Source: Ophelia neglecta
Taxonomy: Eukaryota
NCBI GenBank assembly: GCA_965285935.1
Contig: OZ260662.1
Location: 17,918,001-17,982,000, forward strand
DNA: 64,000 nucleotides
Direction: 5' to 3'
This document shows positions 1,383 through 9,189 of the stretch, piece by piece (position 1 is the first letter of the stretch; each line of letters begins with the position of its first letter). Position numbers and translations under genes: made by a program. A model generated the notes under the pieces. It saw nothing but the letters and a program-made list of their open reading frames with translations, did not search any database and had not been told where the DNA came from.

Positions 1383-2964
1383 TATTTTGCTACACAAAAG
1401 GGATAACGCAGCTTTTAGTCCGAGTAATTGTTATTTTATCTTTGCATTAATTAATTTTACTGTGTTTTGCCTTGTGTTTACTGATTATGCTGTCGTGCTT
1501 TTACTGTGTATAAACAATCCATATACAAACTCAACAGAATACAGACGGCCATTATAAATTTAACAAAATGTAAATTGAATTTGTCTTATAAGTCATATGA
1601 TGATTTATGTATAATGCAGAAGGTTGAAACTGTAATTTCTTTCATTGGGCATACATGTAGGAACAATCCCTCTTTGTGCTACTGCTCACCTTTTCTCCAC
1701 GCACGGTAGAGCAGTTTATTAATCCTTCACGTACACCACATCTACAAAGGCTGCGCTATTTAGCGACTGGACAAAGAGTGCACCTCGTGAAGGGAACTTT
1801 TCACTTCAATTATGAAGTGTGGGTTCATTTCAACCGATAGAACGCAGGAGTGAAAGTGGACAGCCCCATGAATCTTGGTTCTATAAGCAGATAGCATCGC
1901 AGTAGAATGGCAAATCACACTAACCCGGGATCTGCAAAGGCTCTACCTAGTTACTGTGAAATTACAAAGATCAAGTAAAGTAACTCGGCAGCAGTCAGAA
2001 TTTACGCAAACTAGTGTCATGTGAACAGAGTCACGGGCAAAGTTTACAATTACTCTTGTTAGATTTTACTTTCATCATATTCTCAAAATATAAAGACAAG
2101 AGATGGCCATTTAAAATGCGTTTTGCTCACATTTTGGAGTTAACGTGGTTTGCCCTTTGCACGGCACATGTGTCGACCTTTGAATTACTTCTGTTCTCCC
2201 TTCAAGCAATATATCATTGAAAATAGACACAAACCAATGAATATTATAGCACCAAATGTGTTCTCCCTAGCAGCAGCGCTGCTATATGCAATGCTCTGGC
2301 AGCTAATGCTGATCGCATGCATCAGAAGCACCTCAATAGGAGCTAAGGCTGCATTCATCGCGGAAGTATCTGACAAACAAGAATCTAACACAAGCGTATA
2401 GACGAGTGAGAAAACAAATAAAAACACAAGTAAGAATAATTCCGTGTAGAATGGGACCAGGTGCCACAGTTTTTAACGGAAAACCTGCTGGAATTGACTG
2501 TTTATAGTGATTAACCGAGGTGGTATTGCAGTTATTTGCAGGATCCCCTCCAATGACATTGGATAGGTCACATTTCGGGCAGTGACTGTTCCCCACAGTG
2601 ACCATATTATTTGTCGTCTGGCATTATATATCTACATGACATGTGCCTTGGAGGGACGAATGAGTTGTGAACATTACAGCGTGAATCAGGTGATTCCATT
2701 GACTGATTTATAATGATAGGACTAGACTTTACAATTAATAAGAGAACAGAATTCCTTTTTTTGGGATTTTATGTTTACGCTGCATGTACCTGTGCCTTTA
2801 AAGTTGACGAGTGAACGCGGTAATATACACTGTCGGTGTTTTGGTGTAATATATATTTATTTCGTTTGCCCCGTTGATCCTGTGTCTTCTTTGTAATAGG
2901 TGTGCAATCGATTTTACTAGCTTCGTACATTTCCTCGAACGAATGCCAGTACTTATACTTCAAA

Positions 2965-5900
2965 ATGTGCAGGACACTGGCAGCAGTATGTTTGTACATT
3001 TGGATTGATTTCTATATGGCTCGGGACACAGCTGCCCTCTCTAATCTTGTTCATTCGGTGAGCAAGGCACTGGATGGTAGGTGGATTACATACGTACCTA
3101 CCGGTATTGTATGCAATTACTGATATATTTTCTTCTCATCACGTAAAATACCCTTGTAATTGAAATGTTAAATCAAACATCTTTGGACTTTATAGCATCG
3201 ATTTCATATTTATTTAGTGAGAATGCTACCTATATTTCTATGCATTCCCGTGTTTTTGAATTAGCAATAAAAAGTATAGAAATTGCAATGGTAAAATTGC
3301 TTAGACCCCTTCAAATGGTGCGAATAATAGTTAATTGCTTACTTTTACAATGTAGGAAGTAGGGATGTCTCTTTCTTGGCTTATAGTCTAATAGCGTTTA
3401 GCACAATGCCAATTAGTATTATCCCCGATAAAACTATACAGATTTTCACTTTTAACCATCCGTATTATACATACATTCCCAAATCGTTTCCTTTTCATTT
3501 ATGTTTTTACGTTGAAGATTATAGAGGCGTAAAAATCGTCAAAAGTTACTGTTTTTAAATGTAATTCACTAAACCACTGAAGACACTGTCTTTGCAGCAC
3601 AGATCACATGCAGTAACGAATGGTCGAAAACAGACATTTTATTGAGCAATATTTCAAGTTGATGGTTATTTAATGTTTACAAATATAAACAAACAGCAAT
3701 AGTTCACTGTTTCTTCAGTTTCTTGGGAAATATATCGGGAAAGCCAGTACACGTTTATGTTTGACGTACCACGGACTGTGGATTCAACCCGTAACAACGC
3801 CAATCGGTTTTGCCTTAGCCTGGGGGCGGCTCTTGTCTCAATTCAAACGAACGAGGAACTAGATTGGCTCAAAGATAGAATCAAACAAAATGTGGCGTCT
3901 ATCGGAGAAGAATTGGTTCACCAACAATGGTGGACATCTGGCAAATTCGACTACGGTATCTGGGCTTGGGATGACCAAAAACTTACTCCAGGTATGTAAC
4001 AAAGTATGGTTTTTTATGGTACCTTACCTTACTCTTCATTGGTCAGCAGTCAAGGTATGTGGTATTTAAAAAAGCAATTAAACGGCCTGTATTTATCATT
4101 ACCAGTGACTGTAACTGCATTGATGAAGCGCACACCAGGAAAGGAAGACCATCAGAACTTCTTGGCATTAACCCACAGTCATGAAAAATGGCGTTTAAGA
4201 GGATTTTCTCAGAACTATAAATTCAGATTTATTTGTGAAAAAGGTAATTCAAATGTCATTCTTTCTATTAGCATGTTACAGATTTAAACGTCCAAAAGAA
4301 TGTCGCTTTATTTGCTCCGTGAATGTCTGATTCCGAGGAGCTTTGATTATATATGCTGTTGGCCTATCAGAGCTGCCGGATGATAAGTTTGACCCAACTC
4401 TTCCCATTGAGACAAGGCTTATGAAACATCTTTCGCGGGAGTACGATGTGAGGGTGCGAGACTTCAAGAGACGTGATAAATCATTGAACCTTAAAATGTC
4501 CCTTGCTCTAAAAGGCATTTTAAAACTGGTAACTAAATTATTTCTCTGAAATCAACTGAGGTTTACGCCAATTTTACACTATGAAAGAAGGACACTGTTT
4601 ACATAAGTGAACAAATTGGCGTTTTATTTGTGGGTATAATATGAAAAAATTGTGTTTCTCCTTCGTGGAAAACCAATTTGGAATCTACTTCCACGTTGCA
4701 CTAACGGCTAGTAATGTCGATTGCAGCTGTCAAGGCTAATTGTACTTTTTATTTTGTGTTGAAGGACGAACAACGCCAGGTTTTGAGCACCGCTGCAAAA
4801 ATAAATATGGTAAGGCTTATATTCAATATATTTTTTTTGCATGTAGGTGTCCTGTTTGTTGTAAGATAGGTGGTCTATTTGGCTGCTTTATGGTGAATCT
4901 CATTTTAAGCGCGATATAGAAAAATATCATAAGGACACACGTTTGTTTGCCATAATGGGTTTGATAGTAAAGAGCTGTTCCCTTTGAATCTAACTATAAG
5001 GAATGGTTTGACGCGCAACTGACCTGGAGTCCCGTTGACTTTCACAACTTGTCTGTGGTTCACTGCCACCGAGCTGAGATCTGGGTCCCTGAGGTCCTCC
5101 TACTTAACAGGTGACCAACTGCAGCAATGGTCTTATATCGCAATAGGAGCGGCATATATTATTTAAAGACTAATTCATTGTAGTTGGAAAACAAATTAAA
5201 TTATTTATCCATTTACAGCTTAGATGATGACCCTTTAGGTAATAGAATCAAGGATCACATGTGGGTGACGGCAATGGGAGTTGTCCGATGGCAGCCTGAG
5301 GGCGTATTTCATACATCATGTCATGTTAAAATTCGTAGATTTCCTTTCGACGACCAGCTGTGCACAATCGTATTCGGCACAAATCACCAAAACCTCGTCA
5401 ATATAGAATTTAGCGTTTTGGATATTGGGATAGATATCACCAACATGAGACCAAATAACGGCTGGTATATAACAAGGCGAGTATAAGTGCTTTATTTTAT
5501 ATCTATTATCAAGTAGAAATGCAAAAAGGGACATTATATAATGAAGTGTATGCCTATGTCTTCAAAAATGTTTCTGCGTTAATGTTTTTTTAATTTATGT
5601 TCATGAACAGTATACGAATTGCAACAACAAAAAAACAATGCTGCCAAGAAGATGCGCCACCCGAGATGCATTTCACAATACATCTTAAACGCCGTAAAGC
5701 ATACTACATAGTTTCCCTGGTGATACCTTGTTCACTGTTGTCAGTTCTTCTATGGTTCAGCCTCTGGATGCCCTACAGATCGGAGGAGAAATTAACCTGT
5801 ATTTTGTCTGTTCTTCTGGCATTTTGTATAATACTCAATATGGTAGTCTCAGCTATTGCGAAGCAATCCGATGATATACCTTTGATAGGTAAGTCGGACA

Positions 5901-6811
5901 AAAAGAGAGTATATTGAAACAAACGCTTTTAGCATTATTTTGTGAACAATTGCTTTTAGGAAGTTTCAAGAAGGTCTCCTACTGAGAAATATCACCTATC
6001 TTCGCCTCTCAAAAAAAGCCTTGTCCTCTTCTTTTGATCAATGTATATACCTGTACACTCCGGTGATATAACGATTCTTCTTATTCTTTCCGATACCATT
6101 CCTACAACAGCTCATTTGAGTTTGTCTGACTAATTATTTTCTGTCTTTCCTTCGTCAGCCATCTTTGTTGTGTCCATGTTGGCAGTTGGGACGGTCGGAG
6201 CGTGCATTGCCATCCTTGTCACAGCCCTCCGACATCAAGACACGGTCAAAAAGTCCAGCACGTCGCGTGCCAATTTACTTCCCTGTTTTAAAAAAAGGCC
6301 CTCGCAACCTAAGATAGGCAGTATTAACATTGATTCGGCATGTAATCTTTACTCAGAGTGGCACAATCCATGCCTGCCTCAAGTACCATGCCAAAGCAAG
6401 TATCATAAAATGAATTCCACACACTGTGAAAGACGGGGAGCTAGTCGAGTAAGTTCTTACTCGTTCGACACACTGAGTGTGGAAGGTGAGACCAACTTTG
6501 ATGTCGAAGTGGATTATGATGTGATAAGTAAAGAGACGGGGACAACACGATCACAAGAACGTGTCTGCTACCAATCCCGCCGCTTAGACAATGCTTTCTT
6601 GGACAAAGAAATACTCTCGGTCCTTCAACGAACGGACCTCTTCAATTACAAAAAGGGAATAAACTCGAAGAATGCCAAAGACATTGATCACATTAAAGAA
6701 AAATCTGTGGGGGATTATTCTTTAGCAAGAAAAGTGGATTTTGTGTCATCATCGGTGCTGACGGTTATTTCACTAGTTGTTTTAATCACTTTACTATGTA
6801 TACCAGTTTGA
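2965..6811 (+). CDS. CTLD-fused nicotinic acetylcholine receptor-like (Cys-loop) ligand-gated ion channel subunit, 9 exons, 674 aa
   Basis: Manual splice model: 2965-3076, 3719-3991, 4106-4243, 4371-4528, 4765-4809, 5001-5110, 5219-5476, 5611-5888, 6159-6811 = 2025 nt, open throughout with matching intron phases. The introns are GT-AG except one GC-AG. Domains: CTLD (ANRFC..LVSIQTNEE..WWTSG..FICEK); ligand-binding domain (DEQRQVLS, EWFDAQLTW, IWVPEV, Cys-loop CHVKIRRFPFDDQLC, vicinal CC); M1-M3 (KRRKAYYIVSLVIPC, EEKLT..VLLAF, SDDIPLI); M4 (ARKVDF..LLCIPV). Exon 1 (weak signal peptide) is the least certain exon. Confidence 0.88.
3719..4243 (+). other. C-type lectin-like domain (exons 2-3 of the gene above)
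   Basis: SWEIYRESQY..ANRFCLSLGAALVSIQTNEELDWL..WWTSG..WAWDD and ..FRFICEK follow the CTLD pattern. Outer Cys pair present; inner Cys pair, EPN/QPD and WND motifs absent. Confidence 0.85.
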
Positions 6812-9189
6812 GGGATATTTTTTCATTGTACGAACAGTGATTTGAGCCGATTGCGGTTGTGACAAGATCAGTGTGTGCTTACTGAAAACACAATTGCTTC
6901 TGGATAATATACAATGATAATATTTACTTTCTTAGCCATTGGCAGATATTAATTGTTTTCCTAAACTTCGTTTTAGTTCGCAAACAGATAAGTAAGAGCT
7001 AGCCATTAATTCATTTATTAAACCAGACATGGTCCTCCTGTCTGTAGATAGTAAAAGCATCGTTTTTGCGCCTAAATCAAGTAATGTTTCTAAGAAATAA
7101 TGATTAATGTGTGCAAAACTGTGTTTTGTCACGTACCACTTTCAGTTCCCACAACAGGGTCTTGAAACCCACATACATGTAGTTAAATTTTATGAGAAGC
7201 TAGTAAATTGAAATTAAAGTGGGGAACTTGTTCACTAAAAAATTATTGCGTTGTTCATCGGCGTCCAAATAATTTTAGAGACAATATAAACAAAGCCAAT
7301 AATCAACTGGCGTTAAGCTAAGGTTAACCACTCTTTAAGGCTATTTTGTCGTCGGTTCCACGTTAAACATGTTTCCCCCTGAGGCCATGTTGGACTAAAC
7401 ATCAAGCGTTATTGCTAGGACATCGCTCTCGTTAAGAAACACATAGACCTGATAAAAAGAATGTACTGAATAACAACGTTTAAAGGGGTAAGTGTCGATA
7501 GAGAACAACATCGGAATACTAGGTGGTGGGATTATTAGCAAGCTTTTGCAAGCTACTAGTAAACTGCAAAGTATATAAATTTCGTCAAAACCCAATCTTT
7601 TTTAACATATTATCATGTAGGCCGTAAAAGCTCATTAAGTTTAAGAACTCGTGATACTTGTTTGGGTGCGGTTACGTAAGTGGGAATTTTGATTCGTTTC
7701 CACCCAAAAGAAACTACCTGAATGAATCGTTTTGGAAGAAATATCCATCCTTGGAATGGATAAATTGGTCCCACGTTCGGTATACGCTGCTTGTGGATGG
7801 TTCTTTGGTTATTTCAAATGCTACCTAATGTTATGCATTTCACTGTTATGCCTGCTGATACATCGTTACTATTGATTATGCAGGTAATGTATCTGATATG
7901 ATAATTATAAACACCCTAAATAATATCCCTAACAACTTAAAGCTACGTTGGTGGTTAAAATCTCAAATGGATCGGTAGCCCTGGTGGCGTCAGCCATCAA
8001 TGTGTATGCCTTAGACTTGCGAACCGCCTAAAACCGGTGTTCAAATAAAGGCATATCGCACATGTTACGTTTTATCCTAGTATAATAGCCCAAGAAATAC
8101 CACTAGTAAACATTGCAGCTGTAGAGTTTTGATTAAATTAACAGTCTCCGCGGACTGCCACCTAACAGGTATCCTCCCCATCACAGTGCAGGAATAGCTG
8201 CTTTCAGTAAACGTGATTCCCTCCTATTAATCGCAAACATGAATGTGAGACGCGAAGAGTGTATAACCACACACGAAATTCGCGTTGATACGTCCCTGCC
8301 AGTATTCCCTGTCTTAACATGCTAATCTTTCCGAATCTCATAACAAAAAATAATGATAACTATGTTATAATTTTCGTATTTTGTTATCATATAAATCTTG
8401 AACGAAACCTGGAAGGGATTTACGCTTGTAATGTTAAACATTTGTACGTTAAATAAATACTTCTTGACAATGGCATAAAATTGAAGTTTGACAAACCTCT
8501 AATTGGTTCAATATCGTTTTAGTAAACGAGTCATCAACATTCCCAGAACTAAACCCGGAAGCAACAAGGCAATACATGAACCCATGAAATAAGTATTCTA
8601 TCCTTTTTCATTTGAAAGCGATGACTACGCTAAGTTGTAGTTAATCTACTAATATTTATTAAGGTTACCAATGGAGAAGCATGTTGTTTTAGAAACATAA
8701 TAAGAAATGGTAAATTGGTGCATTGCTATTATTTTTTTTTGCATGAACGTATAAGACCAATCATATATCTTTCACTTTTTGATGGTGTCCTTAAACAATT
8801 CGTTACTGAGAAGGAACTCAGCTTAGTTGGTATGTACACATCACATATTTGTCTACTTGAAAGACGTTATTAAACTGCCAATATGTTATAAGGGCATAAG
8901 TGGAAATTCTCCACGCGATGTGTTGATGCCTGCACCAAGCATGTGCCTTAAGGTGCAGCTATGTTATTCTCATGCATAATTCTCCACTGGTCATTACCGA
9001 CTCTGTACATCTTGGCAACTGGCCACCCCAGGACGTTTTCGGTCAGACTACAATATTTTTTCTCAGAGGTAAAAACTCGCTTTCCGCTCGATATGTATCG
9101 CTCCGAGTTACCGTCTCCGAGTTACCGGCTGGATTATAAACCGCAATGCCATAAAATTAGCAATTATTTACCTACTTTTAATTGCCAGG

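Follow-up and report, generated by a model that had tools for sequence, protein, structure and literature searches.

A predicted lectin-linked, nicotinic-type channel gene of Ophelia neglecta with none of the five aromatic residues of the acetylcholine box

Nicotinic-type receptor genes are hugely expanded in worms and molluscs, with a ligand known for a minority of them, and the loss of the binding pocket by itself has known parallels in oyster subunits and in the chemotactile receptors of cephalopods. All binding residues are kept in only 13 of the 33 alpha-type subunits of Crassostrea gigas (PMC6896357), so that lacking some of these residues is common among lophotrochozoans. The pocket residues of the chemotactile receptors diversify among paralogs (PMC11526382). 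Alpo4 of Alvinella pompejana (PDB 8BX5) is an annelid nicotinic-like orphan that is unresponsive to acetylcholine (PMC10338036). Chimeric Cys-loop receptors with lectin, pentraxin or LDLa domains have been described from Homarus americanus, as a class restricted to the lobster and its crustacean kin and undetected in many other lophotrochozoans (PMC8221624). In a survey of lophotrochozoans, none of the nicotinic genes of Capitella was counted as having an additional domain (PMC6896357), and a literature search found no paper on annelid lectin-bearing Cys-loop receptors.

The window analysed here is a 64,000-nucleotide stretch of Ophelia neglecta DNA (assembly GCA_965285935.1, contig OZ260662.1, positions 17,918,001 to 17,982,000 of the forward strand). 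Three-frame reading and exon-wise Pfam scans placed 4765-5690 inside an intron-bearing gene on the plus strand, in which two exons encode a C-type lectin-like domain and six more encode a nicotinic-type ligand-binding domain (LBD), M1 to M3, a cytoplasmic loop and M4. Spliced together, these eight exons (A to H) give 636 codons, or 1.9 kb of coding sequence, with no stop or frameshift, and a candidate first exon lies upstream of them:

2965 to 3076, plus strand: candidate first exon, with ATG, a hydrophobic signal-like stretch and a phase-1 GT donor
3719 to 3991, plus strand: exon A, lectin domain part 1 (Pfam Lectin_C, E=5e-4); six further copies on the same chromosome with 59-69% identity, phase-1 acceptor conserved
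4106 to 4243, plus strand: exon B, lectin domain part 2, ending in a phase-1 donor; 64-67% identity in paralogs
4371 to 4528, plus strand: exon C, linker, N-terminal helix and first LBD strand (Pfam Neur_chan_LBD positions 1-39)
4765 to 4809, plus strand: exon D (45 bases), loop D, with Lys 4798-4800 in place of Trp; flanked by AG and GT, phase 0-0
5001 to 5110, plus strand: exon E (110 bases), W-x-P and loop A, with Leu 5103-5105 in place of Tyr (Pfam LBD 56-91)
5219 to 5476, plus strand: exon F, loop E, Cys-loop, loop B and loop F, with a GC donor (Pfam LBD E=4e-11; PDB alignments)
5611 to 5888, plus strand: exon G, loop C, pre-M1 Arg pair, M1 and M2 (human alpha-7 E=6e-12; Pfam Neur_chan_memb)
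6159 to 6811, plus strand: exon H, M3, cytoplasmic loop and M4, with the stop at 6809-6811; open frame, paralogs align

All seven splice junctions have equal positions and phases in five paralogs, and the 45-base exon sits at the matching place in all family members, including the Capitella teleta gene and L037, a locus of another assembly. Exon sizes of 45 and 110 bases are also those of the corresponding exons of vertebrate nicotinic genes. The acceptor of exon C, directly before a Glu codon, is conserved in the paralogs, which can be aligned with exon H through M3, a conserved loop motif and M4, while the donor of exon F is a GC within an otherwise ideal consensus where the paralogs have GT. 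Regarding the N-terminus, 2965-3076 is the only upstream ATG frame that has both a hydrophobic core and a phase-1 donor matching the phase-1 acceptor of exon A; when the 5' region was compared in translation against that of the paralogs, no conservation of this candidate exon was detected. The junction between lectin and channel parts is in frame and in phase 1, is conserved in five paralogs and is joined in the Capitella gene model, and the intron between exons B and C measures 127 bases and has no in-frame start codon, which argues against the channel part being a separate gene. Splicing, lectin-channel fusion and expression of the window gene are predicted here with comparative gene structure as their one basis; a search for the stretch in RNA runs found none that contains it, and the three runs that do are all genomic contigs of one sample, in which no exons are joined.

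By its profiles, its Cys-loop and its four helices, the predicted product is a member of the Cys-loop or pentameric ligand-gated ion channel superfamily. Of the Pfam profiles, Neur_chan_LBD picks up exons C, E and F and Neur_chan_memb picks up exon G, and nearly all PDB matches are nicotinic subunits. The best PDB match of exon G is human alpha-7, aligned from the Cys-Cys to the end of M2; M1 and M2 thus fall within an alignment to alpha-7, and M3 and M4 are each a hydrophobic segment that lines up among the paralogs. The two cysteines of the Cys-loop (5319-5321 and 5361-5363) enclose 13 residues containing FPFD, W-x-P and the vicinal Cys-Cys are intact, and inspection of the alignments showed that the pre-M1 Arg pair, the Pro-Cys of M1, the Pro-Leu-Ile after M2 and a hydrophobic M4 are all kept. 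An ungapped alignment to alpha-7 and to canonical genes of the genome sets Glu at -1' and Leu at 9' of M2, in the residue numbering customary for the family. These residue hallmarks point to a cation-selective nicotinic-type pore. With respect to what defines alpha-type nicotinic subunits, the vicinal Cys-Cys is present and the aromatic box is absent.

The positions of the box were determined by exon-by-exon alignment to solved receptors and by local alignment with 17 other nicotinic-type genes. The residues at D, A, B, C1 and C2 are Lys, Leu, Asn, Lys and Pro/Ala, and none of the five is aromatic. In loop B, ungapped HMMER alignments put the Trp of C. elegans DES-2 and of Alvinella Alpo4 opposite Asn 5382-5384, seven residues past the second Cys of the Cys-loop, and because the residue is Trp in 17 of the 17 other nicotinic-type reading frames examined in the genome, this Asn is not chance variation. 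Exon E aligns without gaps to beta-2, CRT1 and Alpo4, and its Leu 5103-5105 lies opposite the Tyr of human beta-2 that precedes the conserved Asn of loop A. In loop C, the Cys-Cys at 5639-5644 is paired with that of human alpha-7; the first Tyr site, two residues before it, is Lys 5633-5635, and the second is Ala 5654-5656 by the alpha-7 alignment or Pro 5657-5659 by clade relatives with a loop C of equal length, which is also non-aromatic. Searching the database for loop D with a 20-residue query around the 45-base exon returned chance matches only. The 15 residues of exon D fill positions 40-55 of the Pfam LBD profile, between those of exon C (1-39) and exon E (56-91), and an ungapped backward extension of the exon E alignment brings Lys 4798-4800 opposite W65, the loop D Trp of Alpo4; the Alpo4 numbering offset was checked against F103 and W159 of the Alpo4 paper (PMC10338036). 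Because none of the five positions is aromatic, a classical acetylcholine site is very unlikely on either face of the subunit. The pocket of the window gene is unusually basic, with Lys in loop D, Lys before the Cys-Cys and Arg in loop E, at a site that I take to be the equivalent of alpha-7 117.

These results agree with the core of the initial annotation, which had proposed from the letters of the window that all five box residues are lost while Cys-loop, W-x-P and vicinal Cys-Cys are intact. The losses are borne out at all five sites by structure and family alignments, the three motifs are all present, and the proposal that the fold is kept while the cation-pi cage is gone fits the retention of the pore and gating hallmarks alongside 0/5 aromatics. 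Its suggestion that acetylcholine does not gate the channel is likewise in line with the low probability given above to a classical site. A proper alignment could have restored aromatic residues at these sites and restored none, and the alignment and tree with lophotrochozoan relatives, which had been named as a check, gave non-aromatic sites throughout a six-gene clade with Capitella as its sister.

This clade is one of the nicotinic-type groups in a genome in which at least 83 loci match the Cys-loop exon. The nearest paralogs all lie on the chromosome of the window gene and have upstream lectin exons in equal order and on the equal strand, amounting to seven copies of the lectin domain and six genes on one chromosome. 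Five of the six genes are open from the lectin domain to M4; in the sixth, L044, which looks degenerate, the pair of lectin exons is duplicated. Only lectin exons are present at locus L036 and on two short contigs from metagenomes, L038 and L042, and all three were rejected as further members.

Not one of the six genes has an aromatic residue at any of the five box positions, and the Cys-Cys is kept in 8/8 family sequences, Capitella and L037 included. Loop A is Leu in all six. Listed with the window gene first, loop D is Lys, Val, Ile, Arg, Val and Val, and the residue before the Cys-Cys is Lys, Met, Gly, Asp, Asp and Asn. At the loop B position, five genes have His where the window gene has Asn, and a second His, two residues past the first, is common to five genes; the window gene has Asn and Gln in place of this pair. 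Five of the six genes furthermore share His and Trp in loop E, at the equivalents of alpha-7 107 and 109. This equivalence was set by using the cysteines of the Cys-loop as rulers, and both sites are pocket positions in alpha-7. The site has thus not simply decayed, but carries a new residue set that is partly conserved across the family.

A maximum-likelihood tree of the region from the Cys-loop to M2, from which cephalopod, lobster and vertebrate sequences were left out, unites the six genes in a single clade (100/100), whose long stem measures 1.04 changes per site. The sister of this clade is the lectin-linked channel of Capitella (94/92), and both sit in a well-supported group with L037 and two lectin-less genes of the genome, so that the nearest relatives of the window gene in this tree are annelid nicotinic-type genes. 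Within its subclade the window gene evolves fastest, with a branch of 0.56 vs 0.23 and 0.33. Capitella and L037, which has the same lectin-channel arrangement, have both kept the Trp of loop B and the second Tyr of loop C. Both have lost the Tyr of loop A, the first Tyr of loop C and the Trp of loop D, which is Leu in Capitella and Phe in L037. Because two aromatics remain in the Capitella sister, the loss was stepwise, and the most economical reading is that the lectin fusion is old, that three aromatics disappeared early and that the other two followed on the stem leading to the six genes. Searched exhaustively and without a profile, the lectin exon matched 47 proteins, of which most are single-exon fragments on annelid-like contigs and the best is 45% identical; only Capitella P0005 has a channel part, and no close ortholog with an equal pocket was found among the 47. 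A metagenome scan with a profile of the Cys-loop exon turned up no relatives other than those that have the Trp or are of GABA type.

The lectin domain is the best-conserved part of the family, at 63-85% identity vs 35-61% for the ligand domain, and the cytoplasmic loop is the least conserved. This conservation lends indirect support, and no more, to the suggestion of the initial annotation that the channel may be gated through the lectin domain. Because the domain is split over two exons, exon A alone scores 21.1 bits, just below the Lectin_C cut-off of 22.6; across both parts, the homologous Capitella domain P0005 reaches 27.5 bits over profile positions 4-107, and P0001 and P0058 also pass the cut-off. 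Inspection of the family alignment of the domain revealed no Glu-Pro-Asn, Gln-Pro-Asp or Trp-Asn-Asp. Trp-Arg-Leu is found where Trp-Asn-Asp would be expected, and of the Cys pairs only the outer one is present, the inner disulfide not being kept; the placement of these calcium and sugar motifs follows the general fold of the domain.

Between paralogs, pN was 0.10-0.22 for the lectin domain and 0.23-0.41 for the ligand domain, with a pS of 0.65-0.85; pN and pS are given rather than dN/dS because synonymous sites are saturated. Set against each paralog in the lectin, ligand-binding and M1-M3 parts, the window gene has a pN below half of pS, except for M1-M3 against L034 (0.45 vs 0.61), and because pN stays far below a saturated pS, all parts, those of the window gene included, have evolved under purifying selection for most of the time. 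Between the window and the genomic contigs of the one sample there are 13 coding differences, five synonymous and eight non-synonymous, and three indels, all intronic, such that the frame is intact and no variant creates a stop. With 8/13 coding variants non-synonymous, constraint on the window gene may be relaxed.

Together, the evidence is best read as an intact gene which probably encodes a subunit of a nicotinic-receptor-derived pentameric cation channel with an N-terminal C-type lectin domain and a non-cholinergic trigger. The cation-pi box for acetylcholine would have been taken apart step by step in a small annelid family, whose six genes on one chromosome are co-orthologous to the lectin-linked channel of Capitella teleta. 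The product would still work as a channel subunit. A non-cholinergic signal would open or tune it, and the sensor of that signal would be either the conserved lectin domain atop the pentamer or the rebuilt pocket, which is basic and lined with His and Trp.

If the rebuilt pocket is taken as the main sensor, the genes could be contact or environmental chemoreceptors with a retuned orthosteric site, by analogy with the cephalopod chemotactile receptors, a tentative reading which I consider possible rather than probable. Paralog-specific pocket residues would then tune each gene to a different non-cholinergic ligand, and the three basic residues of the window gene might favour an anionic ligand, while the His-rich paralogs might respond to a metal ion or to protons. 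The differences at the pocket positions among paralogs with a conserved scaffold would be expected from such tuning, as would the Lys, Lys and Arg that line the pocket of the window gene, and the chemotactile receptors demonstrate that a nicotinic scaffold can be retuned (PMC10338036, PMC11526382). Pocket variability fits relaxed constraint equally well, however, and the conserved module is the lectin domain rather than the pocket. The lysines noted in the initial annotation hold for this gene, and its set of basic residues is not shared by the five paralogs, so the anionic ligand it had suggested comes down to a guess for the window gene, and the likeness it had drawn to the chemotactile receptors stands as a functional analogy, not as kinship.

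It is unlikely, though not far behind in plausibility, that the gene encodes a silent accessory subunit that takes one or more non-binding positions in acetylcholine-binding heteropentamers, as muscle beta-1 or neuronal alpha-5 do, with the lectin domain serving assembly, anchoring or modulation. Such a purely structural subunit might well lose the residues of both its principal and its complementary face, as seen here, the more than 80 nicotinic-type loci of the genome could supply its partners, and the pocket loops vary freely among paralogs apart from the Cys-Cys. The persistence of that Cys-Cys throughout the family speaks against an idle site, and so do the conserved pocket His and Trp of loop E and the His of loop B in five of the six genes, which would be unexpected there.

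A more elaborate form of the preferred reading, doubtful as a whole, would make the family an annelid class of lectin-crowned channels, independent of the lobster, in which a lectin domain of non-sugar type is the sensor and the former pocket a second, His-rich or basic site. Were it true, the lectin ligand could be, for example, a surface, microbial or matrix component, the second site would sense a metal ion, protons or an anion, and the window gene would be a functional variant with His retuned to Lys, Arg or Asn.

That the gene is instead drifting towards a pseudogene after duplication, its odd pocket reflecting lost function, is very improbable, since the longest terminal branch of its subclade, the GC donor, the loss of the paralogs' loop B His pair, the eight non-synonymous among 13 coding variants and a degenerate-looking relative (L044) are set against eight open exons, a pN mostly below half of pS, sampled indels confined to introns, a full set of structural hallmarks and a donor that is otherwise ideal.

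If the preferred reading of a non-cholinergic, lectin-bearing channel subunit holds, the family is a natural experiment in which, over dated relatives, the acetylcholine box has been removed stepwise from a receptor whose Cys-Cys tip, gate and pore stayed intact. It would also extend to annelids a lectin-plus-Cys-loop architecture published so far only from the lobster. Provided that it can be expressed, such a channel could show how a neurotransmitter receptor becomes another kind of sensor, and what the vicinal disulfide does without acetylcholine.

Of the described systems, the oyster subunits resemble the window gene in having the Cys-Cys without conserved principal binding residues, and differ in degree: here 5/5 positions on both faces are lost across a whole family, and a lectin domain is added. 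Octopus CRT1 (PDB 8EIS) is a pentameric cation channel of nicotinic descent that has lost acetylcholine binding, as is predicted for the window gene, and the exon E alignment shows that it also has no loop A Tyr. CRT1 ranks high only for exon E, however, and is not among the top 60 PDB matches for exons F and G; for two of the three ligand-domain exons, alpha-7 or muscle subunits are by far the better matches. The pocket of the window gene is polar and basic while that of the chemotactile receptors is hydrophobic, and no lectin domain is named for the latter in PDB titles or in the accessible part of PMC11526382. As the window gene nests among annelid nicotinic-type genes, in a tree built without chemotactile sequences, it is treated here as an analogue of independent origin and not as a member of that group. 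Alpo4 is its mirror image, with the aromatics F103, W159, Y199, Y205 and W65 kept, the vicinal Cys-Cys lost and no lectin domain.

The lobster chimeras, to which the window gene is likened by their published description only, have the architecture that is predicted here for an annelid gene, the fusion of an immune-type extracellular domain, C-type lectin included, to a Cys-loop ligand-binding domain and channel. The closest system is Capitella teleta CAPTEDRAFT_208916 (ELT88907.1), which carries no annotation beyond that of a C-type lectin domain protein and is adjoined by an unannotated channel fragment. Its model joins the lectin domain to the first LBD helix and leaves the rest of the channel beside it on the scaffold, and the fusion went unannotated because the gene model is split in two. 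Apart from the two aromatics that it still has in loops B and C, the Capitella locus matches the window gene closely: its lectin domain is of the matching type (36-39% identical), its Cys-Cys is kept, and lectin exons, N-terminal helix, 45-base exon, Cys-loop and M1-M2 follow each other on one strand in equal order.

Beside the lectin-capped nicotinic-like channel gene of the window, the six-gene family comprises five loci on the same chromosome (L031, L032, L033, L034, and L044), and all five encoded a pair of histidines in loop B, separated by one residue and placed just past the second cysteine of the Cys-loop, where canonical receptors carry a tryptophan and a tyrosine. The window gene has lost this pair, and shares a histidine and a tryptophan in loop E with four of the five genes that have it. 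Such a histidine and tryptophan cluster on loops B and E could be suited to a metal ion or to protons.

In the window gene, the donor of the intron 3' of the Cys-loop exon (5477-5482) was GC, not the GT found at the matching position of its paralogs, and the remaining donor consensus around it was ideal. A second haplotype, seen in genomic contigs of one sample across 2900-6900, differed from the window by about 1-1.6% in introns and 0.7% in exons, and its indels were all intronic: it lacked 6 bases at 4064 and 10 bases at 4546, and had 2 extra bases at 4253. Two of the paralogs were located as follows.

Family members on the family chromosome (G000 C2) of Ophelia neglecta
G000 C2:14098000-14114499, L033 plus L045, six-gene family member
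G000 C2:14457000-14466999, minus strand, L044, six-gene family member

The intron separating the loop A exon from the Cys-loop exon was 8.5 kb long in L033, compared to about 110-1,500 bases in the other family members. L044 is probably a degenerate copy: its N-terminal helix exon was mostly missing, its FPFD motif carried a leucine, and M4 was not recognisable. Both of its lectin exons were duplicated in tandem at a spacing of about 1.47 kb, the copies being near-identical to each other.

Loci compared outside the six-gene family
Scaffold KB311628.1, 16292-25850, L035, lectin-plus-channel gene of Capitella teleta
G000 C2:24805000-24816306, L046 and L020, nicotinic-type gene of Ophelia neglecta

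In the public annotation the single Capitella gene stands as two entries, a 'C-type lectin domain protein' and a channel fragment of 178 residues, and the locus contains unfilled assembly gaps. Its channel exons were matched far more closely by those of L020/L046 (80% identity in the 45-base loop D exon, 61% in the loop A exon) than by the six-gene family, and I found no lectin exon in the 7 kb examined upstream of L020/L046. Despite this closer match, the sister of the Capitella channel in the tree was the six-gene clade and not L020.
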